A stretch of 64,000 nt of DNA from Lepidodermella squamata (GCA_047495785.1 JBLDXI010000007.1:1240001-1304000), one strand, 5' to 3'. Positions 17,012-57,352 are shown, counted from the first letter of the stretch. Program-made: numbers and translations. Notes: a model not told the origin generated them from the sequence alone.

Positions 17012-17051
17012 TTCTAAGCGATTTAATTTACGTGAGTGATATATTGCTCTT

Positions 17052-25701: not shown

Positions 25702-25773
25702 TAGCAGAGCGTAGTTTCGATCTACAGACCTCTGGGTTATGGGCCCAGCGCGCTTCCACTGCGCCACTCTGCT
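25702..25773 (-). tRNA. tRNA-iMet(CAU)
   Basis: 72 nt; A1-U72, three G-C anticodon-stem pairs, T-loop AUCGAAA (eukaryotic initiator signature). Confidence 0.97.
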
Positions 25774-25840
25774 TGTCTGAGAACGAACATCAACTCAAAT
25801 TATTTGTAGTTCCTAATTTTAAATTTCCCATTTCAAAAAT

Positions 25841-25922
25841 TGGCAGCGGTGGGGTTCGAACCCACGCCTCCGAAGAGACTAGAGCCTAAATCTAGCGCCT
25901 TAGACCACTCGGCCACGCTACC
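25841..25922 (-). tRNA. tRNA-Leu(UAG)
   Basis: 82 nt GGTAGCGTGGCCGAG...CCGCTGCCA, long variable arm, anticodon TAG. Confidence 0.97.
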
Positions 25923-26345
25923 CTGCTGGAATGGAACCACTTGACCAAGCGCAAAATTAAAATTCCGAGAAAAATCGTCGATTTGAGCTACCATTTAAAG
26001 ACGTTAAATTTGCCGATTGCGGAAACCGCTGATGTAGAAAATTTCCTAAGACGGCCTTTGGACCATCGCCCTAAAATGCGTGGGTAAGTGAAGATCGGCA
26101 ATAGTCTACAATAAGGAGCAAATTGTGTAACATGACTAGTCGGATGCTTTGAGTTGCTTTGACTCTCAAAACGTCGATTTCTTCGATCAAATTGCTCAAT
26201 AGGTACTCGAAGTAATTTTGCATTGCATTGGCAATAAATACGGAAAGGGACTAAAACCTCGAAATTGCCGGCTCAAATTGTGAGAGAATATTCATCCCTA
26301 TGGGTGGGATAGTACGGGGAATTACGGTATTTTTTCGTGTTTTTA

Positions 26346-26504
26346 CGGGTGTGGCGCGAACGCCGGTACCCAAGTGAAATATTTTGCACCCGACTCCACC
26401 GATGAGGCAGAGCGCAGGGGTCAGCGGACCGCAGTGCAATGGCCCGCCTCGCCCTGGGGCGACCGACTTGCTGAGCTCGGTGCATCCCAGTGCCAGGTAA
26501 GTTT
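26346..26504 (-). ncRNA. U1: U1 snRNA (divergent)
   Basis: 5' AAACTTACCTGG, SL2 loop ATTGCAC, SL4 with TTCG tetraloop, ~159 nt. Confidence 0.92.
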
Positions 26505-26621
26505 AGTGGCCATAGGTCCACGCGATCGACCCTACTCAGCAGTTGGACCATAAACGGATGCTGAAGTCATTTGATTATTCCTCAGATCTTGAAAAAGTCT
26601 GATAAAAAAGATTGCGACATT

Positions 26622-26693
26622 TAGCAGAGCGTAGTTTCGATCTACAGACCTCTGGGTTATGGGCCCAGCGCGCTTCCACTGCGCCACTCTGCT
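26622..26693 (-). tRNA. tRNA-iMet(CAU)
   Basis: Same sequence as the 25702 copy. Confidence 0.97.
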
Positions 26694-26762
26694 CGTCTGA
26701 AGAGTAATCCAATCACTTGATATTGAATGCGAAATTTCTAAGAATTTAAATGGGAAAAATGA

Positions 26763-26844
26763 TGGCAGCGGTGGGGTTCGAACCCACGCCTCCGAAGAGA
26801 CTAGAGCCTAAATCTAGCGCCTTAGACCACTCGGCCACGCTACC
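26763..26844 (-). tRNA. tRNA-Leu(UAG)
   Basis: Same sequence as the 25841 copy. Confidence 0.97.
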
Positions 26845-27041
26845 TTGATGAATTTAAGAACTCCCGCTGAAAATTCGGTTGTTCCTCCTGCCAGTGAGCT
26901 CATGACGTCAGCTCCAAGTTGGATCAAGCTTCTTATCACGGTGATTGTTATCACGATATCCTTTCACCCTCTCAGAGATTAAAATTCCCACAAAACTTAT
27001 CCTTCTCTTTGTTAATCTTTCAGCACAAGAATTATACAAGA

Positions 27042-27656
27042 ATGTCCGAGCCACTACCATTATGCATGTATCGGGAAGACTTAGCCAATCTTCCATCTCT
27101 CTCTTTAATACCTGAAGGTTACAAACTCCGCCGACTCACTGAATTCAATGACAGCGAGATCCAGCAAATCCTTGATCTGGTAATATCAGCTTTCGGCACC
27201 TCCCGAGGCAACATGTCCGCAGAACGAATCCAGTCAGCTTTGATCGACGACAAAACAGTGAAAGCTGCCTTCGTCATCGAACACGTCGAAACAAATCAAA
27301 TCGTGGCTATGGCATGTGCTCGAATATTCGATTCGCCCGAGGAATGCCTTAGTGATACTAGAAGCTTGGAGGATATGCGTAAACTGGTCGCCGACTACCT
27401 TCACGCTGGCTACGTCTACTGGGTAGCTGCCTCGCCGCAGCATTCTGGCAAAAAGTTGGGATATTACGTTTCCGCAGCTGCCCTTAAATTCATGGCTGAG
27501 GAGACGGCGAAAACAGCGGCTTACCTGGAGACCCATGACCAACGACTAGCTGCGATCAAAACTTATTTAAATCTTGGCTTTCACAAAGTCATTAGAGATG
27601 ACACTCAGGAGGCTCGCTGGGAAACTGTTGAGGGCCAATTAAATATTAAAAAATGA
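27042..27656 (+). CDS. GNAT N-acetyltransferase, bacterial-like (GNAT-1)
   Basis: Uninterrupted ORF; motif A GYVYWVAASPQHSGKKLG; motif B LETHDQRLAAIKTYLNLGF. Confidence 0.9.
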   Translation: MSEPLPLCMYREDLANLPSLSLIPEGYKLRRLTEFNDSEIQQILDLVISAFGTSRGNMSAERIQSALIDDKTVKAAFVIEHVETNQIVAMACARIFDSPEECLSDTRSLEDMRKLVADYLHAGYVYWVAASPQHSGKKLGYYVSAAALKFMAEETAKTAAYLETHDQRLAAIKTYLNLGFHKVIRDDTQEARWETVEGQLNIKK

Positions 27657-27692
27657 ATAAAATTCAATAAACGTGGCAATTTTTTATTGTTT

Positions 27693-28481
27693 TCAGCTAT
27701 TGAAGTCAGCTATTTCCTTTACAGCCCTTGAAATTACAGCTCCCAATCGGTTATTTTCCAAATTTTTGCCAGCCGTATTCGTGTTGTAGTAATCCGTCAC
27801 AACTGCAATCGAGGCGTAGGGAATCTTAAATTTGTGAGCTAAAATCACTTCATCTGCATTGTGTCCAAGAACGTGTCCTCCCAGCATCGCATACATTTTA
27901 TTCTCCGCCCGTGACCGGACTGATTGTCCCCCGTCAACAGCCACGTAAGTCGCAACTTGATGCGGATTCAAGCCTTCGCCCAATGCAGCAACTGAAAGCG
28001 CGTTTCGAAGTGATTGGCAATATAGCGGCATATCGAAATGATAGTTCCGATTTTCGCGGCTCGTAAAATCGATCAGTTGATCAATAATAGCTAAATCTCC
28101 GATTCGATGCAAATCAGGCCGCAGAGAAACAACCGAATTTACAGCGAAAATTGCGTCGCATTTGAGAATTTTCTTCACCGCGAAAAGATCAGCCCGGCAT
28201 GAATTCGAATCTCGTTTCATGAAAATCGCATCAATATCATTAATTTTTCCTGAAAAATTAAGAACGATGAAGCAATTAAGGAGGAATTTTCATCTTTTTT
28301 ACCTTCGAAAATTGCAGTCGTAGTAGGTCCATATTTGGTGTCAAGTGGGGTTGGAACTTCTCGTTTTGCATTAATAAATGATGTTTCGACCAACTCAGAA
28401 CCGCTAATTATCGCTACCTATTGAAATATTTAAAAAATTCTTCAAGGTATGAGCTGAATCGATATTACTTACCCTGACCAT
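27693..28481 (-). CDS. divergent MTAP/purine nucleoside phosphorylase-like protein
   Basis: VAIISGS, DTKYGPTT, SLRPD..IGDLAIIDQLIDFT, RSRAENKMY, YASIAVVTDY; two short introns at the 5' end. Confidence 0.78.
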
Positions 28482-28811: not shown

Positions 28812-29960
28812 TTAAGCTGCGATTAAATCAAGGGCGTGGTTCAAAACCTCTGACATAGTAATTCTTTGATCGGCCTCTGCGTGAAGCATTCGTGATTCAA
28901 CCAGCTCGCGAAATTGTTCGCTGAAGACACTTGGTAAAGGAATCAACCTATTGCTGTGAAAAAATCGGTTTTAAATGAAGAATAAATCGGGGGAAAGTTG
29001 CTTCTTACTTCATTACAGCTTCGTAACATTGAAGAATGTTATTTCCAGGGAACTATCATTGGAATACAATTAATTTTTTGGAAAAAATGATTTTTTAAGG
29101 TAACAAACTGGGAGTTTCAAACTCGCGATCTCGTAAACAGTGGCGCCAAGAGACCAAACCTCGGCTCGAAAATCGTAAGTTGACTCGCCAGAAAGCAGTT
29201 CGGGAGCCATATAGGAAACAGAACCAACAATAAAATTTGATGGTATGCTGTTCCTATATTATAGGAATACAATTATAGAATTTTAGGACAGGCCTACGAA
29301 AGTTTTACGTGTTCAATGATTTCGCAATCCCAAAATCGCCGAGCTTGAGATTTTGATCTTCAGCCACAAAAATATTCTGTAATTAGATAGTTTATTTATC
29401 AGCTGAAATTGGAAGGTGAGTCATTACTTCAGGCTTAACATCGCGATGAAGAACGCCTCGGCTGTGAAGGAAATTCAATGTCTCAGCTAGTTGAGCAGTC
29501 CATTTCAAGACTTCGGGTTCAGAAAAAAGGGAACCATTTTGTGCTTTGATGAGATCCTTCAGCGTTCCTTGAATTACAAATTTCACATTTCAAATTATTT
29601 TTTTCAGTTTTCAACAAACCTGTAAATAACTGCAAAATTGTATGAAGGCTCGCATCCTCTGCAATTTGGATAAAAATAAATAATTGATTTTATAACGATT
29701 TGATTATTACCTACGAACCATCCATATATTTCGACAATATTAGGGTGTTTATGAGCAGCCATTAATTGCGGCTCTCGATAAGCCATTTTCGTGAGCCTTT
29801 CTCCAGCTTCCTTGTCATTTTCGCCGAGACTGTCAAGTCGCACAACCTTTAACGCGTAGTGGCTGCCGTCGCTTTTGTCGCGAATTTTGTAAACGCGACC
29901 AAAGCCACCTCTCCCAATTTCGCCTTCGACGGTGTACTGGTTTGAGGAGCTGAATTTCAT
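28812..29960 (-). CDS. NIMA-related (NEK-like) Ser/Thr kinase, multi-exon, kinase domain only
   Basis: GRGGFG, YALK, HRDVKPE-NIF, KLGDFGIAK, VGSVSYMAPE, VWSLG, joined by short introns. Confidence 0.85.
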
Positions 29961-30249: not shown

Positions 30250-30331
30250 GGTAGCGTGGCCGAGTGGTCTAAGGCGCTAGATTTAGGCTCTAGTCTCTTC
30301 GGAGGCGTGGGTTCGAACCCCACCGCTGCCA
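30250..30331 (+). tRNA. tRNA-Leu(UAG)
   Basis: 82 nt, followed by a T-run. Confidence 0.97.
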
Positions 30332-30401
30332 TCATTTTTTCCATTCGAATTCTTGAAACATTTAAAAACAATGATCGAATGGCTAAGTCACTCTTCAGAC
30401 A

Positions 30402-30473
30402 AGCAGAGTGGCGCAGTGGAAGCGCGCTGGGCCCATAACCCAGAGGTCTGTAGATCGAAACTACGCTCTGCTA
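30402..30473 (+). tRNA. tRNA-iMet(CAU)
   Basis: 72 nt initiator signature, T-run downstream. Confidence 0.97.
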
Positions 30474-30519
30474 ACTGTCGCAATATTTTTATCAGCATTT
30501 TTCTAAAAAAAGAGGAATA

Positions 30520-30590
30520 ACCAAATGACTTGATTGTTCGTTTATGGTCCAACTGCTAAGTGGGGTCGATCGCGTGGACCTTTGGCCACT
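30520..30590 (+). promoter_or_regulatory. putative U1 proximal promoter (PSE region), conserved before all five U1 copies
   Basis: CAAATGACTT ~70 nt upstream, then ACTGCT..GTGGGG..G.TCGC.TGGACCT.TGGCCACT, conserved while flanking spacers diverge. Confidence 0.6.
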
Positions 30591-30749
30591 AAACTTACCT
30601 GGCACTGGGATGAACCGAGCTCAGCAAGTCGGTCGCCCCAGGGCGAGGCGGGCCATTGCACTGCGGTCCGCTGACCCCTGCGCTCTGCCTCATCGGTGGA
30701 GTCGGGTGCAAAATATTTCACTTGGGTATCGGCGTTCGCGCCACACCCG
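30591..30749 (+). ncRNA. U1: U1 snRNA (divergent)
   Basis: AAACTTACCTGG...CCATTGCACT...GGCGTTCGCGCC. Confidence 0.92.
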
Positions 30750-32411
30750 TAAAATTACGAAATAAATTACCGTATTTCTTGGAGCTATTTTTGGAGCTCG
30801 TGAAAAAGGAGACATTTCGGTCCGTTTTGCAGGAGATAAACAGTCTCATTTCGCACGTACGAAAAATTTCAACTAGCATCGCGCCTCAATTCCACCAAGC
30901 GGATCTTTTGATTTTCACTTTCGCCTGGGAGTGCTACGACTATGGCTACGACAATGGGACTAGTCTCGTTCGATTCGTCTTGATATTCTACGTCGGACAG
31001 TGTACTTTTATGTGCGCCTAAAACAGGTAAATGCGTTTTAAATTTGACAGAAATCATCTCAGAGTGAAATAGGCTAAAAATAGGCTGAAAAACGCGATTC
31101 ACCGGGCCTCTTTATAGTTCGACAACCATTAAGGCTGCAATAACGTGCTTGGTCTCTAAAAATTCAGTGGAAAATTTGCTGCATTTTACGTGTAGTCGCT
31201 TAGGAGCGCTATCGCGGTAAGGTGTCAAAATATTTGACGAAAGTCGGCAAAATGAAATTTTCAATTTTCACAAAAATCAACCGCGCGTCAGACATGAGAG
31301 CTGTAAAAAGAAGATGGAAAACTAGCCATATTACAACTTAAAGATGCTTTGAAACATTCACCTTAATTATTAACTCAACTTCAAATTTCGATTTAATTTC
31401 TTAATCAATCCCTGAAGATGGTTATTGTGTATAACCGAAACGTTGGAATAAATGCGTTACGTTTTATAAACAAGATTTATTCGAAAAAACTTTTAATACG
31501 GTAATAATAATTAACAATCAAATTACTGACTCGGAATTCCTCTGCGTCGATTTGAAGACTAGTTTGAATACATCACTTTCAGCTTTTGTTATATAATATC
31601 TGAGAAGCGTTCTTTCATTCTCGACTCACGCCATCAACCTTTCATGATTCGTATAATATGTTGTTGTCTGTTCCTTTGAATTATTGCCTCAAAAATAATT
31701 ATTGGAGAGCTTAGGTTTGAGAAAAGCATAAATAAAAAAGGTTGTCTTCTTTCTTTCAGAAGCTTGCAAGTAATGTAATGTAACACTAAGAACTGTTCCT
31801 CAAAGATAATGAAGCAACTTAGATTTTCAAGAATTCTGTCACCTGGGTGGAGCCTGGTTCCCTCGGATGCGTATGTAGACAAAATTGTAAATGTCGACTT
31901 TTAAAATCTGCGCAAAATAACAAAATCAACAGCGTCTCTTTCTTATCATTTCCCAACTTGGAACTGTAACGTGGAAAAGCTTGAACCTGACTTTTTCGAC
32001 GATGAGGATCGTGCCAAGATAAATATTTTGATTTTCATCCACTATTTGATCAAGAAAAACTGATCGAAGTTGCAGATTTCATAAAATATTGCTACCAGTA
32101 GGGTTTCCGCCCACGATGCTCACGAAAGTTGTGCGATACTGCGATACTTTTAGTCTTGACTCCGATCATATTGAAATTCATACATAGACGATGAACAAAC
32201 AGATGCATGACTGTCATGTTCAACATTGGCGTTCTACAGAGCATCAAAAGAGCACGTATTCAATAAAACTTTTCTCCCATCATTCAATCCTATTTCTGGA
32301 CAAAAAGCAGTAAGCTGCAAAATAATTTCAGGCTCACAGTAGCAATATTCCTTCAGCGAATGCATGCAAGACTTCCCAATGATTTACCTAAAACTGTTTC
32401 TAGTCGCATAG

Positions 32412-33606: not shown

Positions 33607-34934
33607 ATGATTAATATGTACATAAGAATGGCTCTAGTTTTCTTCGCAGCAATTTTATTAGAGATCGTCTTGGTTATAGAAAGTTTGGCCCTGGGCAATG
33701 CCAGCAACATTTCGGCTAATTGCAACCCCGATGCTTTGCGTGATATGTTCTTCGAGCTTTGCCCGATAGCAAAATCCAGCAATCTGCCGACGTCATTCCA
33801 CAGGCAGATTAATAACTTATCGGTACCCATCAAAAGTTACTTTGTAACACGTCTATTGGCAATAAACGATGTCAGCGATGTAGCGATGAGGTATTTTGAA
33901 TTATCCAGTTGAACAACTAATTTAATATTCATCATTCCAGCATGGCTATATCCATGACATTGGGTATGATTTGGGACATGCCGTGCGGAGAAGATATAAG
34001 GGAGAAGTTGTGGCCGGGTTACTCGGCTTTTAATCAAGATTTACTTGATAGGATTCAATTCGAAGTTCCGATCGATCAAGTATGGTGGCCGGATCTCCAA
34101 CACATAAACACTATCGGGGAATCACGACCGTTCCGAGGGTAAATATCTAAAACTTTGGTTGGAAATTCCAACCTAAATTTAACTTAAATTAAATTAAATT
34201 TGTTTTACAGGGAAAGGTTGATAAAAGTGCGGCCATTTGTCGTAACCGGGCCGAGATTTGTCATTTACACTGTGCGGATATTTGAATCGCACTGTTTTCA
34301 CTTCAGCTACATCAAGTTCCCGTTCGATGTTGCAAATTGCACCTTCGAGTTCGAAAATGAAAATCTCAACAACGAGGTTGATCTTGTGATCGATACTGTT
34401 GAGGCCAATTTAAATCTACTTAGGGACGATGATATTTGGACTTTCGTGGCATTCAACGGGGTCGTTTATGACTTCGGTGGATATCCGCATGTCACTGTTA
34501 CTCTAACTCTAAAACGAAAGTTTCAATACTACGTCGGAAATGTGCTCCTGCCAATGCTCACCCTTTTTATTCTCCAAATTGCCTCTCTAATTATGGACCC
34601 TGCGCATCCAGACCGGCCAAATTTTTGTGTGACTGTTAATTTGGCTACCGCTGTTTTACTCGCACTAGTCTTTTCGCTGATTCCTCGAACGTCGCAGGAT
34701 GTTTATTTGATCAATATCCTAGTCAGCTTCATGGTGATCTGTACACTTCTCACGTGTTATGCCTTGACTACCTGCAGTCTCAGCAGTTGGAAGCCGGCTC
34801 GACAAAGAATTGGAGGAAAATTGTTCCACCGAGGGATCAAGGTAATCAGGATTGCGGATCTGGCGATGGGATTAGCTGCATTCATTACCGGCATGGCAGT
34901 TGCTACTTACTATGGGGTCAAAATGTTGGCCTGA
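33607..34934 (+). CDS. divergent Cys-loop receptor subunit without lectin domain (LGIC-5)
   Basis: Signal peptide; two introns (~33890-33940, ~34139-34210); VWWPDL; Cys-loop CFHFSYIKFPFDVANC; M2 PDRPNFCVTVNLAT; four TM helices. Confidence 0.85.
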
Positions 34935-35950: not shown

Positions 35951-36707
35951 TTCGCTTCAAAATGAGCTGATGACACAAAAACCTTTAGGTGGGCAATAAT
36001 CGTTAATCCTGTCCGGCTTACAATAGTCCTCAATCCTGCAGACATCCGTCCAACGAGCGCTAATCCACACTCGCACACATGGTTTTGAAATGTGGGTGTC
36101 CACTCCCAGGAATCATTATGTGTACAAACAACATACGAGCGCGCAGTTGGTGACGTTCGCGGGAGAGAAAACCAGCTTCCTTGATCTCTTTATCTGCTTT
36201 ATTATTACCCTGGGAGAATCACTTAATTGACCCACGACGTAAAATCATTTAGGACAAGGAGAAAAAGATCTCAAAAATACTAGACCTAGCCGTTATTAGA
36301 CAGAATTTTCCTCTATCCGTGAGACGATGACGAAAATACGATGATGAAAACACATCTGCCGGCCAGCGTTCAATAAGGCGAGACCAGTTCGAGTTCGTCA
36401 TTTTTCCTGCAAGCGTCGCGTGCGGGCATGTTTTAGAGCGGCCTGAGCGCGGAGTGGTAAATCCCCGCTGCCCCGATCGAACGCGCTCGGGCCGAGATTT
36501 TTTAACCCGGACAGGCCCTTCAAAGGAGTCCAACAAGCCGACCCGGCCCGTGGTCACCGTCGGGACTAAATCAGAAACTCTAAACTCATTCTAGCTTGCA
36601 GTTGGGCAAATATTTGAGGTCATGCGTGACTCCGGGTAATTAGGATACAAATTTCTTTATGTAGTAGCCAATTATATGAAGTCAGCTGATCACTTATATT
36701 TCAGCAA

Positions 36708-36789
36708 GTCGCTATGCCCGAGTGGTTAAGGGGTCTGACTAGAAATCAGATGCGGTCTCCGCGCGTAGGTTCAAATCCTACTGGCGACG
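36708..36789 (+). tRNA. tRNA-Ser(AGA)
   Basis: 82 nt; anticodon arm TCTGA-CTAGAAA-TCAGA; long variable arm; G discriminator; T-run downstream. Confidence 0.95.
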
Positions 36790-37021
36790 AATATTTTTTG
36801 TAAAAAAAAAAGAAATTTCATTCAGCTTGAGGCAACGATATAGGATACAACAAACATATCTCATTTATTATGGCCAAGCAGTACCCTCATCCGAATTTCA
36901 ACCATTAGGCAGTTCTTACTGCTTTTGAATGTATAATTAATAAATGAATAAATTAATGATTTTGAAAGTATTATTTAAAATACTGACGCAGATTTCTTCT
37001 CCAATATTCCGTGGTCTCTGC

Positions 37022-37615
37022 TCACAGCTTCCACGGAACTTTGACGAATCCTAATCTTAAATAAATTTTGACTGCCGCCAGTCGCCAATCATTAGTCTCC
37101 AGATACGCCGCCGTCTTATCAGTACGCTCCGCCAGGTATTTCAGACAAGCAGCCGAAGCGTAGTACCCCAGTTTCTTCCCAGCATGCTGCGGCGATGAGC
37201 TAACCCAACAGATGTAGCCGGCGTGAATGAACCTAGCAACCAGCGCTCGCATGTCTTCGAGAGTGGTAAAACTGGTCAAACATTCTTCGGGCGAATTGAA
37301 AAGTCGGACGCAGCTCGTGGCCACAATCTCATTAGTATCTACGGTTTCCACGACAAAAGCCGCCCGCATTGTTGGGTCTTCAATCAGTGCCGATCGAACC
37401 AAAGCTTCAGTACAAGGGCCGGTTACAGGGTCAACCCCGTAAGCTGCATCCCAGAGTCGTAGAATTCCAGAGGTTTCATGCTCAGTGAACTCCGTGACCA
37501 GACGTAATCGGTAACCAGCTGGAAGATTCTCTAAAGATGGCAGATCGTTAAGATTGTCGCGATACATGCATACTATATCTTGAGCGACGGCCCGTTGTTG
37601 CGGTTCTGCGGTCAT
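37022..37615 (-). CDS. GNAT N-acetyltransferase (GNAT-2)
   Basis: HAGYICWVSSSPQHAGKKLG; LETNDWRLAAVKIYLRLGF; C-terminus shorter than paralogs. Confidence 0.88.
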   Translation of the reverse strand: MTAEPQQRAVAQDIVCMYRDNLNDLPSLENLPAGYRLRLVTEFTEHETSGILRLWDAAYGVDPVTGPCTEALVRSALIEDPTMRAAFVVETVDTNEIVATSCVRLFNSPEECLTSFTTLEDMRALVARFIHAGYICWVSSSPQHAGKKLGYYASAACLKYLAERTDKTAAYLETNDWRLAAVKIYLRLGFVKVPWKL

Positions 37616-38756
37616 TTGAGATAATCACTTATATTCAGCCTTTGCCGAATTGTATGAGGCGGAGGTTTTTCTTAAAGTGAGCAGCAATTATAATGCTATG
37701 ATGTAGTCAATTCGCTTTTCTTGGTCTGCCGGGTTCAGTAGTAGCCAATATAGCACACTACTACGTCAGTCTTGTGTTTGCGTTCCAGGGTTCAAGCTTC
37801 AGCTGGCACCGGCGCCTCCGCTCTATGGAGAAAAAAATTGCTGAATTAGGGCTATTATTCTTGCCAGTGTTGCTAAATTGGAGGTATCCGAAAACCGATG
37901 CGGTAGCATCTTAACCATCAGTCTCAACTATCAGCCTGAATACTGCTCGAAATCATAATCCTTCAGCCCTGAATAAAGACCATCAAAGAAAATGCCGCTT
38001 ATGAAATACTATCTATAAAATGAGAGATTAAATAATTTGAAGGTGGTAAAATATCTTGAGGCCTTTCACATTTCTTGCGCTCAATTACGGATGCTAAAAA
38101 ATGTTTGCTACCGTTTCTTGGCTCCTGGTAGCCTGAAAGACCAGCTTTCCAGCGGCACCAAATAAATAGCGTTTTGAAAATTCCTGATCCCTTCATTGCG
38201 GAATGTCCCAACTTAACACTGCTGCCCAAATGTATCGTAATCGGTCAAATCTTTATAAAGGGAAAATGGGAAAATTCTAATTTTTCTTAGAAATAGGAAG
38301 TCAGCCTTCTGAAAGTCTCGAAGCAACAGTTTTGTCCAAAATAAGTGCCTCATTAGGCTGAATTTTTTACAGATTATGTTTTAGCGGAACCAAATGGCAA
38401 ACTTATGAAAGTTGCCATTATCGAACAATTGTTTTAGTTCGGAAAATAACGACCAGGCCTTAAACAGAAAACCTCGGAGAATTTTAAATTAATTTATTTG
38501 GATTCCTTGAATTTATCGTGTAATTTCAGAAAATTCAGAAAATTTGGTTCCAATAACAGTTACATGTGAGGAACATGAAGGAAATAGTTCCATCTTTCAT
38601 CTTTTCCTTGGGACATTAACCATGATGTCAGCTTTACGAGTCAAAACGAAACCATCAAACTATAATTTATTGGTCAAAATTTGAATTTATTCATAATATT
38701 ACCTAATTTTCGCAGTAATTAAAATTTGAAAAATCAAATGCTACTGTCATGAGTTG

Positions 38757-39380
38757 TCACTGAGAGCTAAGGTTAAGCTTCTTTTCAACCTCAGACCAAC
38801 GAGCCTCGTGAGTTGGGTCTCTAATAACCTTGCGAAACCCAAGACTTAGGTACATTTTCAGAGCCGGAAGCCGCCAATCATTCGTCTCCAGATAAGCCGC
38901 AGTTTTATCCGTGTGATCAGCCATAAACTTCAAAGCCGCAACAGTGGCGTAGTAGCCAAGTTTCTTGCCAGGATGTTGCGGCGAGGCACAGACCAAATAG
39001 AGGTACCCAGCGTGGATGAAATCACTTATTAACTGCCGCAGTTCTTCAAGCCCAGTAAAAGCACTCGTACAATCATAGGGCGAATCGAAAATTCTCGCGC
39101 TTCCAGTCGCCACAATTTCATGAGTTGCCTCATGCTCGATAACAAAAACAGCTTTCACAGCCTTATCTTCGATCAAAGCATTTCGAATTCGCTCCTCGGT
39201 GAATCTACCGGCTATGTGAGAGTCGCCATAAGCAGCGATGCATAAATTGAGAATACCATTGATATCAGTTTGATTGAACTCAGTGACCCTGCGAAGTCGA
39301 TAGCCGGCTGGAATTTCCGATAGAGAGGGTAGATTCAGAAGGTTCTCTCGATACAGGCATAACATCTGCTCCATGGCCAT
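38757..39380 (-). CDS. GNAT N-acetyltransferase (GNAT-3)
   Basis: HAGYLYLVCASPQHPGKKLG; LETNDWRLPALKMYLSLGF. Confidence 0.9.
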   Translation of the reverse strand: MAMEQMLCLYRENLLNLPSLSEIPAGYRLRRVTEFNQTDINGILNLCIAAYGDSHIAGRFTEERIRNALIEDKAVKAVFVIEHEATHEIVATGSARIFDSPYDCTSAFTGLEELRQLISDFIHAGYLYLVCASPQHPGKKLGYYATVAALKFMADHTDKTAAYLETNDWRLPALKMYLSLGFRKVIRDPTHEARWSEVEKKLNLSSQ

Positions 39381-39490
39381 TTTCTGGAATGAATACTGGA
39401 AAAAACGTACTTTTACGCTTTATCTCTAGAACGCTATCACTTGATAAGAAAAAGCATAATATGCCCGCGATTCTTCTTTTATTAAACTTT

Positions 39491-39656
39491 CAAAGACCTT
39501 TCAATGTCATTCCAAGCAGCCTCATGGTTCTTCTGTCGAATGAACTTACGAAAGCCAAGGCTATAAGAGGTTTTGAAGGCTGAAGCTCGCCAATGTTTGC
39601 CTGAAGAAAATCAGCAGTTTTATATATCTTCTCAGCCATGAAATTCAGAACAGCAA
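39491..39656 (-). pseudogene. 3' relic of a GNAT-6-type gene
   Basis: Collinear with 56111-56286; remainder deleted. Confidence 0.8.
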
Positions 39657-39729
39657 AATAGTCACCATACTATGAATTAAGAAGTATGATAAGACTGATT
39701 TAGATAATAAATTTCCATCAAAACACCGC

Positions 39730-39811
39730 GGTAGCGTGGCCGAGTGGTCTAAGGCGCTAGATTTAGGCTCTAGTCTCTTCGGAGGCATGGGTTCGAACCC
39801 CACCGCTGCCA
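39730..39811 (+). tRNA. tRNA-Leu(UAG), variant with G>A at the first T-stem base
   Basis: GGAGGCATGGGTTCG instead of GGAGGCGTGGGTTCG, giving an A-C mismatch. Confidence 0.9.
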
Positions 39812-39881
39812 TCATTTCGTCCATTTGAATTCTTCGAAACTTCGTAACCAAAGATCCAGTGATTAAATCACTCTTCAGACA

Positions 39882-39953
39882 AGCAGAGTGGCGCAGTGGA
39901 AGCGCGCTGGGCCCATAACCCAGAGGTCTGTAGATCGAAACTACGCTCTGCTA
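39882..39953 (+). tRNA. tRNA-iMet(CAU)
   Basis: 72 nt initiator signature. Confidence 0.97.
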
Positions 39954-40069
39954 AATGTCACATTATTTTTGACCAGAGCTTAAATGAAAAAAGGAATAGC
40001 CAAATGACTTGAGTCCCCACTTATGGTCCAACTGCTGAGTGGGCTCGATTGCGTGGACCTTTGGCCACT

Positions 40070-40228
40070 AAACTTACCTGGCACTGGGATGAACCGAGCT
40101 CAGCAAGTCGGTCGCCCCAGGGCGAGGCGGGCCATTGCACTGCGGTCCGCTGACCCCTGCGCTCTGCCTCATCGGTGGAGTCGGGTGCAAAATATTTCAC
40201 TTGGGTACCGGCGTTCGCGCCACACCCG
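40070..40228 (+). ncRNA. U1: U1 snRNA (divergent)
   Basis: Full-length copy. Confidence 0.92.
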
Positions 40229-41098
40229 TAAAATTACGAAAATAAAGAGCCCAACTATCAAGGTCACCTAACCTATGTATTGCGGGGCAGCGGCCTGAGG
40301 GCTTAACTTACAAAGGCAGTTTCCTCTCTCGACCAAGGTTGAATGTATATTTCACAGCAACCTTAATGAAATGATTAATAGCATGCATTGATTTGTTTTG
40401 CGCTTTGCGCTGAAGCTCCACAAACGTTCGAACTCAGCCGCTCCTCCTGGCTTCATGGAGGTGAATCTTTTCTCGCCCCTCCTCAAGCTTGGAGGGGACA
40501 GGGAAACCATTCAAAATCATGAGCAACATGACTAAGACTAAGCAGGTTCCAGCAGCAGCGTATCACGCGTCAAAGTCATTGATTCGAGCATCTCAAAGCA
40601 TTATACCAAGTTAATGTATAAAATCATGCCAGGGATTCCGTTTAATCATTGCCAGCTTAAGCGGCAATCTTTGACAAACTTTGAAACTTTGACAAATCGT
40701 GACTTATTTTGCCCCGAAATTCTCTCTAAATTTCTCACAAGAATATGGCGTTAACGTCATTCTCCGAGTCATATTTAACTAGGCATCACAATAAATTCCA
40801 CAGCGTTCAAGTGAAATGCTCCAGACATATGCTTGAAAACCATTTTTAGCATAAAAATAAAAAATGGAAAGAGCGCGAGGAGCATTCCTGCCGCCGTGTT
40901 GCTCTAAGAACGTCTAAGCTCTAAGAACGTGCTCCAAGTTAATATGAATAAAATGCTCATCTTTAATCTTGTTAAACTACTCTCGGCTGTGATCTTTTGA
41001 CCATAAGACTAGTGTACTCATCTCGTGTGTGTACTCGAATGCCTGTCTTACATGATGATTACAAGCTACAAATTACCTTCAAATATCTCACTCTGTAG

Positions 41099-44755
<3,657 letters not shown>

Positions 44756-44932
44756 CTTGGAGCAATAGTAACTTGGAGCACTTTGATTTTATCTGGACTA
44801 ATTTTGCAAATGATCAAGAGCAACAGAGGCGTGCAAATAAAAACGCCAGTGTGGCTACATACAAGTTGCTTTTTATTATGTTAGCTATCAGCAGGGTTAT
44901 TAGGTTCAGTCAATCTGCGAAGGCAGTGATCC

Positions 44933-45015
44933 TCTGAAATTAGGGACAGTGATGGCAGGCCGCTCACGATAAATCTCGATAAATGGACAAATTCAAAGCA
45001 TGAGGTCGTCAGAAA
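44933..45015 (-). pseudogene. 5' relic of a GNAT-6-type gene
   Basis: Degraded match to 56656-56728, head-to-head with tRNA-Leu 45096. Confidence 0.7.
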
Positions 45016-45095: not shown

Positions 45096-45177
45096 GGTAG
45101 CGTGGCCGAGTGGTCTAAGGCGCTAGATTTAGGCTCTAGTCTCTTCGGAGGCGTGGGTTCGAACCCCACCGCTGCCA
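45096..45177 (+). tRNA. tRNA-Leu(UAG)
   Basis: 82 nt copy. Confidence 0.97.
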
Positions 45178-45246
45178 TCACTTTTTTCATTCTTATCTTC
45201 AATAACTCAAAAGCAATGATTGATGGATTAATGCCTCCCTCAGACA

Positions 45247-45318
45247 AGCAGAGTGGCGCAGTGGAAGCGCGCTGGGCCCATAACCCAGAGGTCTGTAGAT
45301 CGAAACTACGCTCTGCTA
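45247..45318 (+). tRNA. tRNA-iMet(CAU)
   Basis: 72 nt copy. Confidence 0.97.
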
Positions 45319-45433
45319 ACTGTCGCAACATTTTTATCAGAATTTCGATGAAAATAGAAATAACCAAATGACTTAATTGTCCGTCTATCGCGTAACTGCT
45401 AAGTGGGGCCGGTCGCTTGGACCTTTGGCCACT

Positions 45434-45592
45434 AAACTTACCTGGCACTGGGATGAACCGAGCTCAGCAAGTCGGTCGCCCCAGGGCGAGGCGGGCCATT
45501 GCACTGCGGTCCGCTGACCCCTGCGCTCTGCCTCATCGGTGGAGTCGGGTGCAAAATATTTCACTTGGGTACCGGCGTTCGCGCCACACCCG
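45434..45592 (+). ncRNA. U1: U1 snRNA (divergent)
   Basis: Full-length copy. Confidence 0.92.
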
Positions 45593-46008
45593 TAAAATAA
45601 CGAAAAAATATCGTAATTCCCCGTACTATCCCACCCATAGGGATGAATTTTCTCTCTCAATTTGAGCCGGCAATTTCGATATTAGTCCCTTCCCGTATTT
45701 ATTGCCAATGCAATGCAAAATTACTTCGAGTATTGAGCAATTTGATCGAAGAAATCGACGTTTTGAGAGTCAACGCAACTCAAAGCATCCGACTAGTCAT
45801 GTCACACAATTTGCTCCTTATTGTAGACTATTGCCGATCTTCACTTACCCACGCATTTTAGGGCGATGGTCCAAAGGCCGTCTTAGGAAATTTTCTACAT
45901 CAGCGGTTTCCGCAATCGGCAAATTTAACGTCTTTAAATGGTAGCTCAAATGGACGATTTTTCTCGGAATTTAATTTTGCGCTTGGTCAAGTGGTTCCAT
46001 TCCAGCAG

Positions 46009-46090
46009 GGTAGCGTGGCCGAGTGGTCTAAGGCGCTAGATTTAGGCTCTAGTCTCTTCGGAGGCGTGGGTTCGAACCCCACCGCTGCCA
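46009..46090 (+). tRNA. tRNA-Leu(UAG)
   Basis: 82 nt copy. Confidence 0.97.
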
Positions 46091-46287: not shown

Positions 46288-46944
46288 TCAAAAAAGGCCA
46301 CTCGAATTTACTTTCAACAGATTGGGATCCACTTGTCCGCGAGAGGCGATAAGCTTTTCGATAGTATCCCACCGATCCTCGTGAGTTGGATCCCTGAACA
46401 GCTTTTTGAAACCAAGGTCAAGGTATATTTTAATAGCAGGCAATCGATGGTCGTGAGTTTTCAGTATAGCAGCAGTTCTATCGGTTTTTTCAGCTATAAA
46501 CCTCAAAACTGCTGCTGTGACGTGGTATCCAAGCTTTTTGCCGCTATGTTCCTTCATAGCAGCGACGTAGCAAATGTAGCCAGCATGCAAGTAGTCAGCC
46601 ATAAGAAGCCGATTCTCCCGAGCAATTTTGTCATCCCCGCGACATTCATCCGGCGAGTCGAAAATTCTGGTACAGGCTATAGCCACTATTTGTTTAGTTG
46701 GAACGTGATCGATAACATAAGTTGCCTTTAATGTTGTATCGCTGACCACCGCCATGCGAATGTGATCTTCGGTCAGTTTACCAGATGGAATTTCGTAAGC
46801 AGTCATTAATAGGTTGAAGATTTGCGTGATTTCTTCCGGCGAATATTCAGTCATCAATCGAAGAGAGTAGCCGTCTTGAAGTCCTGTCTGATCGGGAAGA
46901 TCATCGAAATTCTCGCGGTACATAAATAGAGGCACTGAATCCAT
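46288..46944 (-). CDS. GNAT N-acetyltransferase (GNAT-4)
   Basis: HAGYICYVAAMKEHSGKKLG; LKTHDHRLPAIKIYLDLGF. Confidence 0.9.
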   Translation of the reverse strand: MDSVPLFMYRENFDDLPDQTGLQDGYSLRLMTEYSPEEITQIFNLLMTAYEIPSGKLTEDHIRMAVVSDTTLKATYVIDHVPTKQIVAIACTRIFDSPDECRGDDKIARENRLLMADYLHAGYICYVAAMKEHSGKKLGYHVTAAVLRFIAEKTDRTAAILKTHDHRLPAIKIYLDLGFKKLFRDPTHEDRWDTIEKLIASRGQVDPNLLKVNSSGLF

Positions 46945-48261: not shown

Positions 48262-48876
48262 TTATCTCTTCGCAGCCAAATTAGTTTCTATCGCTTCCCA
48301 CCGGCTCTCGTGTGATGGATGACACAGAACTTTGTTGAAACCCAGTCGAAGGTATGTCTTAATCGCAGCTAATCTCGGGTCACTCGTCTTCAAAACAGCC
48401 GCCGTTCGATTAGTTTCCCTTGCTAAGAAGTGCAACAACGCTGCTGTAACGTAGAACCCTAATTTCTTGCCTTCATGCGACGGTGAAACAGCGACGTAGC
48501 AGATGTAACCAGCATGCAGGTATTGCGCCATGACATCCCTCGACTCAACAGCATCAGCCCAATGGCCTTCACATTCATCCGCTGAGTCGGCAATCCGAAC
48601 ACAAGCAATGCCAACTATTTCCTTAGACTGTTCGTGGTCTATTACATAGGTAGCTTTTAGCGTTTTGTCGAGGATTAAAATTTGTCGAATGTGCTGCTCC
48701 GATAGCGTGTCGCTTGGGATTTGATAAGCGGCCAGGATTAAATGATGAATTTCGGTTATTTCTTGCTGGTTGTAGTCGGTTATCCTCCGCAGTGAATAGC
48801 CCTCTGGTAGGTTATCAATTGATGGCAGATTGTTGAGATGTTCTCGATACATGTAAAGCGGGAAACGCCGTTCCAT
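48262..48876 (-). CDS. GNAT N-acetyltransferase (GNAT-5)
   Basis: HAGYICYVAVSPSHEGKKLG; LKTSDPRLAAIKTYLRLGF. Confidence 0.9.
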   Translation of the reverse strand: MERRFPLYMYREHLNNLPSIDNLPEGYSLRRITDYNQQEITEIHHLILAAYQIPSDTLSEQHIRQILILDKTLKATYVIDHEQSKEIVGIACVRIADSADECEGHWADAVESRDVMAQYLHAGYICYVAVSPSHEGKKLGFYVTAALLHFLARETNRTAAVLKTSDPRLAAIKTYLRLGFNKVLCHPSHESRWEAIETNLAAKR

Positions 48877-53193: not shown

Positions 53194-53351
53194 CTCTTAT
53201 TTATCGGCAAAACACTAGTTTTTTTCGATGCACCAAACTGTCGGCAGCTGTCAATTTTTCTAACTCTTTTGAGCAAAACAAAATCGTAAAATATGTTAAC
53301 TCAGTTTTTCAATTATTTTAGGATGAGGGAAATTAAAAAAAAATGAGTTAA

Positions 53352-55191: not shown

Positions 55192-55263
55192 AGCAGAGTG
55201 GCGCAGTGGAAGCGCGCTGGGCCCATAACCCAGAGGTCTGTAGATCGAAACTACGCTCTGCTA
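55192..55263 (+). tRNA. tRNA-iMet(CAU)
   Basis: 72 nt copy. Confidence 0.97.
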
Positions 55264-55382
55264 ACTGTCGCAATATTTTTAATCAGAATTTATGAAGAAA
55301 AGAGGAATATAACCAAATGACTTCAGTACCCTTTTATGGTCCGACTGCTGATTGGGGTCGATCGCTTGGACCTATGGCCACT

Positions 55383-55508
55383 AAACTTACCTGGCACTGG
55401 GATGAACCGAGCTCAGCAAGTCGGTCGCCCCAGGGCGAGGCGGGCCATTGCACTGTGGTCCGCTGACCCCTGCGCTCTGCCTCATCGGTGGAGTCGGGTG
55501 CAAAATAT
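55383..55508 (+). pseudogene. U1: 3'-truncated U1 snRNA
   Basis: Matches U1 up to CAAAATAT; rest of the Sm region and SL4 replaced by AAATTACG(T) repeats. Confidence 0.85.
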
Positions 55509-55879
55509 AAATTACGTAAAATTACGTAAAATTACGAAATAAATTACCTTACCTATTTCTCGAAAATATGCCGCCCTTCCTTGCCAGAAGAGTACTAATG
55601 TGAACCACCCGATTTTATTTTTCAGGTCTTATCCCAGACGGGAGAGTTTTACTCGTTGTACGGGGTTTCCGTTTCCATCAATTTTGCATTGAGGCAATTG
55701 GGCACATCAAAGTCTCGAAACAGCAAGGCTATCCAAATAAAACTTCCTGAAACAAAAATTCCTTCAGTTTTATACAAAAAGTTGGGTCCAATCTGACGCA
55801 AGTGGGCCCAAATCATAGACCAAATCAGGCAGAATTAGTTGTAATCGTCTCACTTGAAATCTATCTCGGTCTACGGATA

Positions 55880-56010
55880 TAAGCAGCAGCTATCCATGAA
55901 TTGAAAATGCCATCGATTGAGCTCGGTAACCCTGCGAAGTCGATAGCCGGATGGAATTTCTGATAAGGAGGGTTCTCTCGATATAGGCATAAAATCAGCT
56001 CTATGGCCAT
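55880..56010 (-). pseudogene. 5' relic of a GNAT-3-type gene
   Basis: Collinear with ~39230-39380 with deletions (SLSEIPSGYRLRRVTE). Confidence 0.8.
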
Positions 56011-56110
56011 TTTCTGGAATGAAAAATCTGACTTTAAGCTTTATCTCTAGACCGCTATCAGTTGATGAGAAAAAGCTTAATTTGACCACGAATCTCATTT
56101 TATTTGACTT

Positions 56111-56728
56111 TCAAAGACCTATAGCTCTTTCAATGTCATTCCAAGCAGCCTCGTGGCTAGTTAGTCGAATGAATTTACGAAAGCCAAGTCTGTAATAGGT
56201 TTTGAAGGCTGGAACTCGCCAATGTTTCGACTGAAGATAAGCGGCAGTTTTATCGGTCTCTTCAGCCATAAAATTCAAGACAGCAATTGTCACGAAATAG
56301 CCAAGCTTTTTGCCGGCATGACGTGGATGTGAGCACACCATATAAAGGTAGCCAGCGTGAAGGAATTGGGCAATCAGCCCTTTGAAGTCGTAAGTGTCCT
56401 TATCAGGGCTATAGGGGCATTCATCTGGTGAATTGAAAATCCTAGCACAGCCTGTTGCGACGATTTCGTTCGAAGCAATGTGTTCAATTACGAAGACTGC
56501 CTTGACTGTTTTGTCTTCGGTCAGGTACGATCGAGTTTTAGCTTCTGTGAATAAACCGCCAGAGTGGCAAACACCGAATGCAGATGTATAGAGCTGTGTG
56601 AGGGCGGAGATTTCGTCTACGGTGAATTCAGTCACCCTGCGAAGGCGATAACCATCTGGAATTAGGGACAGTGATGGCAAGCCGGTCAAGTTATCTCGAT
56701 ACATGCAAAGCATGAGGTCGCCAGACAT
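56111..56728 (-). CDS. GNAT N-acetyltransferase (GNAT-6)
   Basis: HAGYLYMVCSHPRHAGKKLG; LQSKHWRVPAFKTYYRLGF. Confidence 0.9.
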   Translation of the reverse strand: MSGDLMLCMYRDNLTGLPSLSLIPDGYRLRRVTEFTVDEISALTQLYTSAFGVCHSGGLFTEAKTRSYLTEDKTVKAVFVIEHIASNEIVATGCARIFNSPDECPYSPDKDTYDFKGLIAQFLHAGYLYMVCSHPRHAGKKLGYFVTIAVLNFMAEETDKTAAYLQSKHWRVPAFKTYYRLGFRKFIRLTSHEAAWNDIERAIGL

Positions 56729-56845
56729 TCTGAATATCTTTCTCGAGCCTGTCAAAAGAGCACTGAGAAGCTAAGAAGACCAAAGTGTGAATTAAGTATG
56801 ATAAGACTGATATAGATAAGGAATTTCCCTCAAAACACCGCGGAA

Positions 56846-56903
56846 GTGATGGCAGGCCGGTTAAATTATCACGATACATGCAAAGCATGAGGTCGTCAGA
56901 CAT
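56846..56903 (-). pseudogene. duplicated GNAT-6 5' end
   Basis: MSDDLMLCMYRDNLTGLPS inside a tandem duplication (56671-56843 / 56846-57025). Confidence 0.8.
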
Positions 56904-57023
56904 TTTGAATGTCTCTGTCATTGAGCGTGTAAAACGTCAATTTATGAAGCGAAGAAGTCCATACTATGAATTAAGAAGTACGATAAGACTGATTTAGATA
57001 ATGAATTTCCATCAAAACACCGC

Positions 57024-57105
57024 GGTAGCGTGGCCGAGTGGTCTAAGGCGCTAGATTTAGGCTCTAGTCTCTTCGGAGGCGTGGGTTCGAACCCCACCGC
57101 TGCCA
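57024..57105 (+). tRNA. tRNA-Leu(UAG)
   Basis: 82 nt copy. Confidence 0.97.
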
Positions 57106-57270
57106 TCATTTTGCTATCAGCCACGGTTGACACAGAAACTCCAAGCTAATTTCAGCAGGCAGTTTGGCAAATATTTGAAGTCATGCGTGACTCAGGGTAA
57201 TTAGAGGATACAAGTTTCTTTATGAAGTAGCCAACTATATCCAGTCAGCTGGTCACTTATATTTCAGCAA

Positions 57271-57352
57271 GTCGCTATGCCCGAGTGGTTAAGGGGTCTG
57301 ACTAGAAATCAGATGCGGTCTCCGCGCGTAGGTTCAAATCCTACTGGCGACG
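57271..57352 (+). tRNA. tRNA-Ser(AGA)
   Basis: Same sequence as the 36708 copy. Confidence 0.95.

Follow-up and report, generated by a model that had tools for sequence, protein, structure and literature searches.

GNAT acetyltransferase genes and fragments of a tRNA/U1 array at one locus of Lepidodermella squamata: neighbours probably by descent

Animals have gained bacterial GNAT genes by horizontal transfer, as described for Hoplolaimina nematodes (PMC4828791), and in yeast tRNA genes are reported to lie, as replication-fork barriers, at the breakpoints of segmental duplications (PMC2518615). Both descriptions bear on a 64,000-nucleotide stretch of the Lepidodermella squamata genome (GCA_047495785.1 JBLDXI010000007.1:1240001-1304000; this whole stretch is called the window below), where GNAT genes lie among genes for tRNAs and U1. 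Like the nematode genes, the GNATs of the window are single-exon, their nearest relatives are bacterial, and the host copies are monophyletic; they belong, however, to another GNAT subfamily, and the transfer is here a candidate, suggested by those bacterial nearest relatives. As in yeast, the limits of duplicated blocks coincide with tRNA genes or lie no more than 25 bp away, and identical tRNA genes offer homology; the mechanism proposed here is read from block boundaries. The third comparison is with this genome's own tRNA/U1 array unit, parts of which recur in the window as Leu-iMet-U1, U1-Leu and Leu-Ser pieces with the same RNA sequences; in contrast to a head-to-tail multi-tRNA array, the unit is split in the window into short fragments scattered among protein-coding genes. 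We suggest that the locus is probably a mosaic of local segmental duplication, inversion and deletion, in which the GNATs adjoin RNA genes by descent, not function.

RNA genes of the window were called with ARAGORN for tRNA and Rfam covariance models for U1, yielding 15 tRNA genes and five U1 genes where the earlier note on this DNA had placed them. That note's description of a Leu(UAG)>iMet>U1 unit present four times at fixed spacing, with partial copies besides, is borne out: in the four complete units, Leu and iMet are 69-70 bp apart, and iMet and U1 115-117 bp.

25702-25922, minus strand: partial unit, Leu-iMet without U1 (Leu(UAG) 25841-25922, iMet 25702-25773; ARAGORN, Rfam)
26345-26844, minus strand: complete unit 1 (Leu(UAG) 26763-26844, iMet 26622-26693, U1 26345-26504)
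30250-30750, plus strand: complete unit 2 (Leu 30250-30331, iMet 30402-30473, U1 30591-30750)
36708-36789, plus strand: solitary tRNA-Ser(AGA)
39730-40229, plus strand: complete unit 3 (Leu 39730-39811, iMet 39882-39953, U1 40070-40229)
45096-45593, plus strand: complete unit 4 (Leu 45096-45177, iMet 45247-45318, U1 45434-45593)
46009-46090, plus strand: extra Leu(UAG) downstream of unit 4 (ARAGORN)
55192-55538, plus strand: partial unit iMet-U1 (iMet 55192-55263, U1 55383-55538 with divergent 3' end)
57024-57352, plus strand: Leu-Ser partial unit, with which the larger array unit opens (Leu(UAG) 57024-57105, Ser(AGA) 57271-57352)

All five U1 genes score above the gathering threshold of RF00003 (69.5 bits), four at 102-103 bits and the copy at 55383-55538 at 77.4 bits, and the CAU tRNA carries eukaryotic initiator marks in an 18-copy invariant consensus (A1:U72, a GGG/CCC anticodon stem, A54 and A60). 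Among copies, the RNA genes hardly differ (p-distance 0-0.013), and the spacers that separate them differ by 22-33%. Leu and iMet are trailed by T-runs and U1 is preceded by conserved upstream blocks, features that make every RNA gene look like a separate transcription unit.

The larger array unit comprises 12 genes, Leu(UAG)-Ser-Gly-Gln-Ala-Leu(CAA)-Arg-Lys-Ala-Leu(UAG)-iMet-U1, and was found again at L008, L010, L011, L019, L024 and L026. From 413 first-look candidates across the genome, no fewer than 18 complete cassette copies and some 20 partial ones were scored, on contigs C7, C16, C32, C17, C10, C48 and C1. The window pieces belong to this unit by gene order and by spacing (Leu-iMet ~70, iMet-U1 ~116 and Leu-Ser ~165 bp). 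At 20 other cassette loci, covering 200 kb, we found no GNAT or GNAT relic at E<=0.05; their 5' neighbours, of other gene families, stand 80-1355 bp away, divergent in 11 cases and in the same direction in nine, and include a PI-PLC-X-like family at six loci (a lead only) and a methyltransferase-like family at three. "Co-amplified", the earlier note's word for this association, is only partly right, as a window cassette resembles the other window cassettes no more than it does copies from the rest of the genome. In a star-like cassette tree they form a clade in none of 200 bootstraps, and a single window-cassette clade is not rejected by an AU test (p 0.08); spacer divergence is 0.33 and 0.22 in the window against 0.34 and 0.24 genome-wide, and flanks differ among most cassette copies of the genome.

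Using Pfam and tblastn we identified in the window six paralogous GNAT genes, all of them full-length and single-exon, and four relics, listed here with one further reading frame to which we return below.

27042-27656, plus strand: GNAT 27042, 204 aa (PF00583 31.7 bits, tblastn, tree)
29604-29960, minus strand: protein kinase fragment or exon (Pfam Pkinase, E 1.4e-13)
37022-37615, minus strand: GNAT 37022, 197 aa, C-terminus short; 3' end 233 bp from tRNA-Ser
38757-39380, minus strand: GNAT 38757, 207 aa; the copy chosen for folding (pLDDT 93)
39485-39654, minus strand: frameshifted GNAT relic covering roughly the 57 C-terminal residues; 76 bp from Leu 39730
44896-44967, minus strand: decayed N-terminal GNAT relic, a weak match (tblastn E 0.002, 62% over 24 residues)
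46288-46944, minus strand: GNAT 46288, 218 aa; 3' end 198 bp from Leu 46090
48262-48876, minus strand: GNAT 48262, 204 aa; no RNA gene within 2.1 kb
55880-56013, minus strand: N-terminal GNAT relic, nearest to GNAT 38757
56111-56728, minus strand: GNAT 56111, 205 aa; ATG 296 bp from Leu 57024
56817-56909, minus strand: duplicated 5' fragment of GNAT 56111 (91% over 22 residues); 115 bp from Leu 57024

The six GNAT proteins share 43-63% mutual identity, and so have diverged strongly beside near-identical RNA genes, as had been claimed. The whole genome holds nine full paralogs, six of them in the window and three elsewhere (C54, C25 and C26), and none of the latter has a tRNA or U1 within 5 kb. 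In the tree the window GNATs are a clade (100/97) nested inside these tRNA-less paralogs, so the GNAT-tRNA link arose once. Saturated dS and a dN/dS of ~0.09-0.30 indicate that the copies are old and constrained. A genome-wide linkage of GNATs to tRNA genes, which had been proposed as a check, thus fails from both sides, at the three paralogs elsewhere and at the 20 cassette loci.

The nearest relatives of the family are bacterial (Phycisphaerae, Armatimonadota and Capsulimonadaceae, 33-43% identity), and the monophyletic host copies have in common an insertion of ~20 residues. Word-based searches, not exhaustive and with mostly nameless matches, gave no named eukaryotic homologue. The family is of probable bacterial ancestry. 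The relatives lie in dense bacterial gene neighbourhoods, with a DeoR-type regulator adjoining at two of five loci and sugar-metabolism genes at several; none of the five loci has a tRNA as neighbour of the GNAT.

Within the window, a GNAT gene or relic had been described head-to-head with tRNA-Leu at 26844, 39730, 45096 and 57024, with ATGs ~120-200 bp away where the 5' end is preserved. An intact gene takes this place at 26844, where the ATG of GNAT 27042 is 198 bp off; at the other three junctions a relic comes first or stands alone. At 39730 the C-terminal relic, which matches the corresponding end of GNAT 56111 at 75% identity, intervenes before an intact ATG at 350 bp; at 45096 the GNAT side is reduced to the relic 130-200 bp upstream, with no intact gene; and at 57024 the 5' relic at 115 bp precedes the intact ATG at 296 bp. 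The unit at 30250 is head-to-head with the kinase fragment 29604-29960, not with a GNAT.

Alignment of the window with itself shows several duplicated blocks. The segment 25816-26844 recurs inverted at 46117-45096 (91.7% identity), its boundary falling precisely on the Leu 5' end, and 39665-39817 matches 56959-57111 at 98%, ending 6 bp past Leu, after which iMet follows in one copy and Ser in the other. Ser(AGA) with its flanks is likewise duplicated (36572-36799 and 57133-57362, 91.7%), so Ser 36708 is a remnant of the array unit's Leu-Ser portion. The two copies of a GNAT-GNAT-Leu block, 39231-39656 and 55885-56286, are 77% identical, 44905-45087 matches 56627-56824 at 70% at the nucleotide level, and 56670-56846 matches 56845-57028 at 81.5%. 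About 65 bp upstream are common to Leu 39730, 45096 and 57024, and the GNAT 5' relic is also common to the last two, which points to one ancestral junction. The 26844 junction does not align with the other three, making a second, independent GNAT-Leu junction possible. The genes separating the modules are unrelated to each other, so the locus does not have the form of a simple tandem array, and some other route may have carried small GNAT+tRNA modules to their places.

We therefore favour, as probable, the mosaic reading, in which two kinds of element, array-unit fragments and a lineage-specific GNAT family, would be functionally untied. The array unit holds two Leu(UAG) genes, and the compared Leu(UAG) copies differ by ~1%; recombination between the two would leave a short Leu-iMet-U1 cassette. 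One ancestral GNAT-to-tRNA-Leu junction, possibly two, would have been copied together with the GNATs, and identical tRNA genes may then have supplied the homology for later exchange and conversion. Of the two explanations offered by the earlier note, hitchhiking on tRNA-linked recombination is the one supported by these results: the link is at one locus only, three of four Leu junctions have common flanks, and blocks end at tRNA edges.

A regulatory tie is unlikely. On this view the divergent tRNA-Leu, a Pol III gene that TFIIIC occupies and nucleosomes leave free, would lend open chromatin, as promoter or as boundary, to an intronless GNAT of foreign origin; the GNAT could thereby have become established, and duplication of GNAT and tRNA as one module would be favoured. 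The head-to-head layout at four junctions fits such a role, as do purifying selection on all six window GNATs and the finding that these bacterial-like, single-exon genes nevertheless have a host-like GC content and, in most copies, poly(A) signals soon after the stop. Three older paralogs, however, have no tRNA within 5 kb; the tRNA-proximal GNAT is decayed at three of four junctions, with the intact ATG 296-350 bp off or gone, so GNAT-Leu spacing is not conserved; GNATs 46288 and 37022 face tRNAs by their 3' ends, not their 5' ends, and 48262 has none nearby; and cassette neighbours elsewhere have no preferred orientation. It is distinctly unlikely that a bacterial GNAT became established in this animal genome by landing head-to-head with tRNA-Leu at the edge of an array, the Pol III gene giving open chromatin or a promoter and identical tRNAs driving amplification of GNAT and tRNA; if this were true, tRNA arrays would be nurseries for foreign genes.

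We give little credence to a mobile cassette that inserted repeatedly and independently, by preference at GNAT 5' ends. The star-like cassette tree, the differing flanks of most genome copies and the unalignable 26844 junction would suit it, but the three junctions with a common flank represent one event, the 20 other cassette loci have no GNAT, and a domain search of the neighbouring reading frames scanned gave no transposon-related Pfam domain.

The proteins themselves speak to function. Five copies score 31.7, 26.4, 23.3, 21.1 and 41.0 bits against PF00583 (cut-off 20.7 bits), placing them in the GNAT superfamily (the PF00583 clan of Pfam), as does, for GNAT 56111, a score of 22.2 bits against FR47 (cut-off 22.1), its PF00583 score being 19.3 bits. 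An AlphaFold model of GNAT 38757 (pLDDT 93.1, pTM 0.90) matched many GNAT structures in Foldseek with probability 1.00, and H136, G138, L141 and G142 are invariant across all nine paralogs and the aligned bacterial relatives, in line with a GNAT fold bearing the pyrophosphate-binding acetyl-CoA motif of the Q/R-x-x-G-x-G/A type. The window GNATs are a lineage-specific, single-exon family of predicted acetyl-CoA-dependent N-acetyltransferases. The top Foldseek matches were MshD, MAB_4324, a clavulanate tandem GNAT, glucosamine N-acetyltransferase, VipF and GNA1. MshD and amino-sugar N-acetyltransferases (PDB 1ozp/2c27, 7q3a, 5kf1, 1i12) gave the best fold matches (E 1e-7 to 1e-4), and the acetyl-CoA motif H-x-G-K-K-L-G and the Tyr of the I-K-T-Y-L-x-L-G-F block are conserved as in them; in contrast to the MshD type, the window GNATs have one domain and no tandem pair. 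Mycothiol synthase MshD proper (TIGR03448) was rejected as an identity (15.8-40.9 bits against a cut-off of 163.1, single domain). From fold and relatives, the predicted substrate is most likely a small molecule: an amino sugar, an amine or a thiol.

Such a substrate sits poorly with the functional link that the earlier note entertained and itself called speculative, in which the GNATs would acetylate tRNA (ac4C-like) or aminoacyl-tRNA (AtaT/TacT-like) and the Leu, iMet and Ser dosage would compensate. We regard this as very improbable. Proximity itself is in its favour, as are MprF/aa-PG synthase domains, users of aminoacyl-tRNA, at Foldseek ranks 18-50, albeit with low TM-scores (0.43-0.48). 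NAT10, Kre33 and TmcA, which write ac4C in tRNA and rRNA, are large proteins of several domains, in which a helicase-type ATPase and a tRNA-binding tail accompany the GNAT domain PF13718. This ac4C-writer identity was rejected for the window GNATs, single-domain proteins of 197-218 aa with no PF13718 match; NAT10/TmcA is not among the fold or sequence matches listed, and the genome's canonical NAT10-type (PF13718) gene lies on C29. AtaT and TacT, whose features the earlier note had already found not obvious here, appear neither among the PDB sequence profile matches (E<=0.01) nor among the 50 best Foldseek matches. With both groups the window GNATs have only the general GNAT fold in common, lacking an RHH antitoxin partner, helicase and tRNA-binding domains and any specific sequence or fold match. 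No RHH/DUF1778 antitoxin gene lies beside a GNAT in the window, or in an operon with it at the five bacterial loci; in the relative L028 an Unstab_antitox gene, which is unrelated, is found ~300 bp from the GNAT on the other strand. Against the link stand also the tRNA-free surroundings of the three paralogs elsewhere and of the bacterial relatives, and the dozens of cassette copies without a GNAT.

That repeats in this repeat-rich region were mis-joined or collapsed in assembly is scarcely credible, as the copies differ by 8-30%, the region is internal to a 4.66-Mb contig, and 68% of sampled words of 36500-40400 occur in one public run, possibly the source sample.

Five of the six window GNATs lie at most 350 bp from a tRNA. 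Under random placement inside 25702-57352, five of 20000 trials left five of six GNATs no more than 350 bp away from an RNA gene, a proximity far from random, and one that would count against duplication by descent, if the copies, which are mutual duplicates and not independent, are taken as independent.

GNAT genes do neighbour tRNA and U1 genes in the window, and this pattern is best explained by descent: a junction where a GNAT gene meets the edge of a tRNA/U1 array fragment, one or possibly two, multiplied and reshuffled by segmental duplication. ARAGORN and Rfam place 15 tRNA genes and 5 U1 genes where the earlier note had put them, and bear out its four complete Leu(UAG)>iMet>U1 units (cassettes) with fixed spacing (69-70 bp, then 115-117 bp) and further partial copies:

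26844-26345, minus strand, complete cassette
30250-30750, plus strand, complete cassette
39730-40229, plus strand, complete cassette
45096-45593, plus strand, complete cassette
25922-25702, partial unit, Leu-iMet
46009, partial unit, Leu alone
55192-55538, partial unit, iMet-U1, the U1 3′-divergent (77 bits)
57024-57352, partial unit, Leu-Ser(AGA)
36708, Ser(AGA) standing alone

The CAU tRNA of the cassette carries eukaryotic initiator marks, and Leu, iMet and U1 look like separate transcription units, judging by T-runs 3′ of Leu and iMet and conserved blocks within 70 bp before U1. With 77 bits against 102-103 for the other copies and a loss of similarity across roughly the final 34 bases, the U1 at 55383-55538 (+) is probably decaying.

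Pfam and tblastn identified six full-length, single-exon GNAT paralogs in the window, 43-63% identical and named here by start coordinate, together with relics:

27042-27656, plus strand, GNAT paralog
37022-37615, minus strand, GNAT paralog
38757-39380, minus strand, GNAT paralog
46288-46944, minus strand, GNAT paralog
48262-48876, minus strand, GNAT paralog
56111-56728, minus strand, GNAT paralog
39485-39654, GNAT relic
44896-44967, GNAT relic
55880-56013, GNAT relic
56817-56909, GNAT relic

The neighbourhood described in the earlier note holds for five of the six GNATs, which lie ≤350 bp from an RNA gene, a proximity matched by random placement in 5/20000 trials, the GNAT copies not being independent; GNAT 48262 has no RNA neighbour, and opposite the cassette at 30250 lies a kinase fragment rather than a GNAT. 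Its head-to-head arrangement likewise stands at the junctions to Leu, where a GNAT or relic lies upstream, but fails for GNATs 37022 and 46288, which point their 3′ ends toward the tRNA. Synonymous sites are saturated and dN/dS is ~0.09-0.30 (rough, given that saturation), indicating from codon comparison that the duplications are old and all six copies constrained. GNAT 37022-37615 (-) stops ~20 residues early, just past an invariant Trp, and lacks most of the last helix; its dN/dS against its sisters is ~0.15 despite the shortened C-terminus. An MTAP-like (5′-methylthioadenosine phosphorylase) exon (27693-28220, -) lies tail-to-tail with GNAT 27042-27656, 37 bp past the GNAT stop.

Checked genome-wide, the GNAT-tRNA linkage is not general. 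Only three further GNAT paralogs exist in the genome (contigs C54, C25 and C26; 35-38% identity), the 5 kb to each side of them containing no tRNA and no Rfam match, and a GNAT or relic is absent from 20/20 other cassette loci (200 kb, E≤0.05). Maximum-likelihood analysis separates the nine host paralogs, as a single clade, from 30 bacterial or metagenomic relatives (100/97), with the topology (C54,((C25,C26),(six window copies))); given the tRNA-less paralogs, the tRNA association maps to a single branch. A metagenome scan with the four closest paralogs found no relative. Around the earliest-branching GNAT, on C54, are three Cys-loop receptor genes (2766-3833, 5822-6889 and 8339-9406 of its locus, L004), and the same receptor family flanks the window's GNAT cluster (34200-34934 and 1455-20520), so a GNAT/Cys-loop-receptor linkage may be older than the tRNA link.

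Compared with itself, the window shows homology among the flanks of Leu 39730, 45096 and 57024, with ~65 bp in common, and a GNAT 5′ relic shared by the flanks of 45096 and 57024. The 77% match between 39231-39656 and 55885-56286 indicates that an ancestral GNAT tandem pair beside Leu was duplicated, one member per copy decaying later. A 98% identical patch (39665-39817 against 56959-57111) stops 6 bp past Leu, after which one copy continues with iMet and the other with Ser, so that recombination or conversion appears to have made a joint at the tRNA. A 1-kb block, 25816-26844, recurs inverted as 46117-45096 (91.7%) and ends exactly at the Leu 5′ end. Junction 26844 is not alignable with the others, and may thus have an earlier or a separate origin. 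The four window cassettes are not a clade (0/200 bootstraps; AU p 0.08), and the nearest relative of each lies elsewhere in the genome. Because spacers have diverged to the genome-wide level (0.33 and 0.22 in the window, 0.34 and 0.24 genome-wide) while RNA genes differ by ≤1.3%, the near-identity of the latter is mostly a matter of purifying selection; the disparity previously remarked between these genes and the strongly diverged GNATs (43-63% protein identity) is upheld. Within the same region, 42400-45000 is GC-rich (0.49-0.52 against ~0.42 around it), with overlapping 130-190-aa reading frames on both strands that have no Pfam match, one of which (43932-44348) resembles L016:9473-9775 at another fetched locus; a decayed repeat is one possibility for this stretch, an unknown gene another.

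The genome is of animal type and comprises 121 Mb in 151 contigs, the window lying on C7 (1240001-1304000) and including Cys-loop receptor, SOCS-box, ankyrin and class C GPCR genes. A one-cassette query (413 first-look candidates) yielded at least 18 complete and ~20 partial cassettes on seven contigs. Across 20 fetched loci the cassette forms the last part of a longer unit that recurs, Leu(UAG)-Ser(AGA)-Gly(UCC)-Gln(CUG)-Ala(CGC)-Leu(CAA, opposite strand)-Arg(UCG)-Lys(UUU)-Ala(AGC)-Leu(UAG)-iMet-U1, often followed after U1 by the Leu of the next unit; each of the pieces found in the window (Leu-iMet-U1, U1-Leu and Leu-Ser) is a sub-segment of it. Leu(UAG) copies, two per unit, differ by ~1%, and exchange between them would remove the nine intervening genes and leave Leu-iMet-U1. 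A GNAT gene would have come to lie, once or possibly twice, next to the edge of such an array fragment, and segmental duplication would have multiplied and reshuffled the junction, identical tRNA genes serving as exchange points. This agrees with yeast, in which duplication breakpoints have tRNA genes at them (PMC2518615). The earlier suggestion that the GNATs hitchhike on tRNA-linked recombination is therefore favoured by three homologous Leu junctions, by duplication blocks ending at tRNA and by the restriction of the link to one locus.

A regulatory link, in which a tRNA gene would serve a foreign gene as its promoter or boundary, is unlikely: the tRNA-nearest GNAT copy has decayed at 3/4 junctions, which argues against selection on head-to-head spacing. 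An enzymatic link to tRNA, also raised earlier, is very unlikely: neither AtaT nor TacT is among the PDB sequence matches at E≤0.01 or the 50 listed Foldseek matches, the NAT10/TmcA-type domain PF13718 has no match in the six window GNATs and is found in a gene on C29, and the loci of five bacterial relatives contain no adjoining RHH antitoxin and no tRNA.

The AlphaFold model of GNAT 38757-39380 is confident (pLDDT 93.1), and Foldseek matches it best to the active domains of MshD, MAB_4324 and a clavulanate-pathway tandem GNAT, along with clostridial glucosamine N-acetyltransferase, VipF and GNA1; PDB and NCBIfam profile searches gave weak matches to Naa30 and MshD and nothing else. Word-based searches of 5.8 billion proteins returned no relative above 43% identity, those named being all bacterial (Phycisphaerae, Armatimonadota, Capsulimonadaceae). 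The five relatives' loci are densely packed with bacterial genes, among them DeoR regulators, an aminotransferase, DeoC, sugar enzymes and Lon. Since the relatives are bacterial, and the host copies share a ~20-residue insertion (in all nine, missing in relatives), host-like GC content and, in most, poly(A) signals soon after the stop, the family likely originated in bacteria and then expanded, like the precedent of bacterial GNAT transfer to animals (PMC4828791).

We suggest that descent by itself can produce a striking gene neighbourhood: one enzyme-gene/tRNA-gene junction, copied repeatedly amid tRNA arrays, mimics functional pairing. The locus offers no new route into tRNA acetylation biology; what it contributes is a probable GNAT transfer from bacteria to an animal, with later expansion to nine constrained copies, and a concrete case of array fragments in which tRNA genes bound the duplication blocks. 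Promoter capture, if true, would bear on how foreign genes gain expression in animals.

Elsewhere the cassette's 5′ neighbour is divergent at 11 loci and co-directional at 9 (80-1355 bp away). Cassette neighbours include a PI-PLC-X-like family at six loci (Atlas lead only), a methyltransferase-like family at three, and Cys-loop receptor and SOCS-box genes; the other cassette-linked families drew no name from NCBIfam. A brief look at tRNA-array regions as general collectors of foreign genes found no clear bacterial signal in the PI-PLC-X-like and methyltransferase-like families, and the MTAP-like gene is ordinary. A literature search for tRNA/U1 clusters in rotifers returned nothing relevant. 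The PI-PLC-X-like family, of ~277 aa and without Pfam match, lies directly downstream of U1 at six cassette loci and is near PI-PLC X-domain proteins in the protein Atlas (score 0.94, lead only):

L012:2713-3546, minus strand
L026:3631-4464, minus strand
L010:9230-10003, plus strand
L011:9232-9981, minus strand
L019:9415-10002, plus strand
L008:1-681, minus strand

A second small conserved reading frame often follows (e.g. L012:1949-2329), and the ~277-aa family is another one duplicated along with the cassette. The GNAT window has no second copy of the kind seen for the locus pairs L008/L019, L009/L017, L011/L026 and L014/L018, which match over their full 10 kb, with flanks 88-99% identical and reading frames in common. 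From this pairing, ~70 kb near the end of C16 (1009-1079 kb) looks like an inverted second copy of C7:1470-1542 kb; large segmental duplication, a divergent haplotype and an old homeologue are all possible sources of it.
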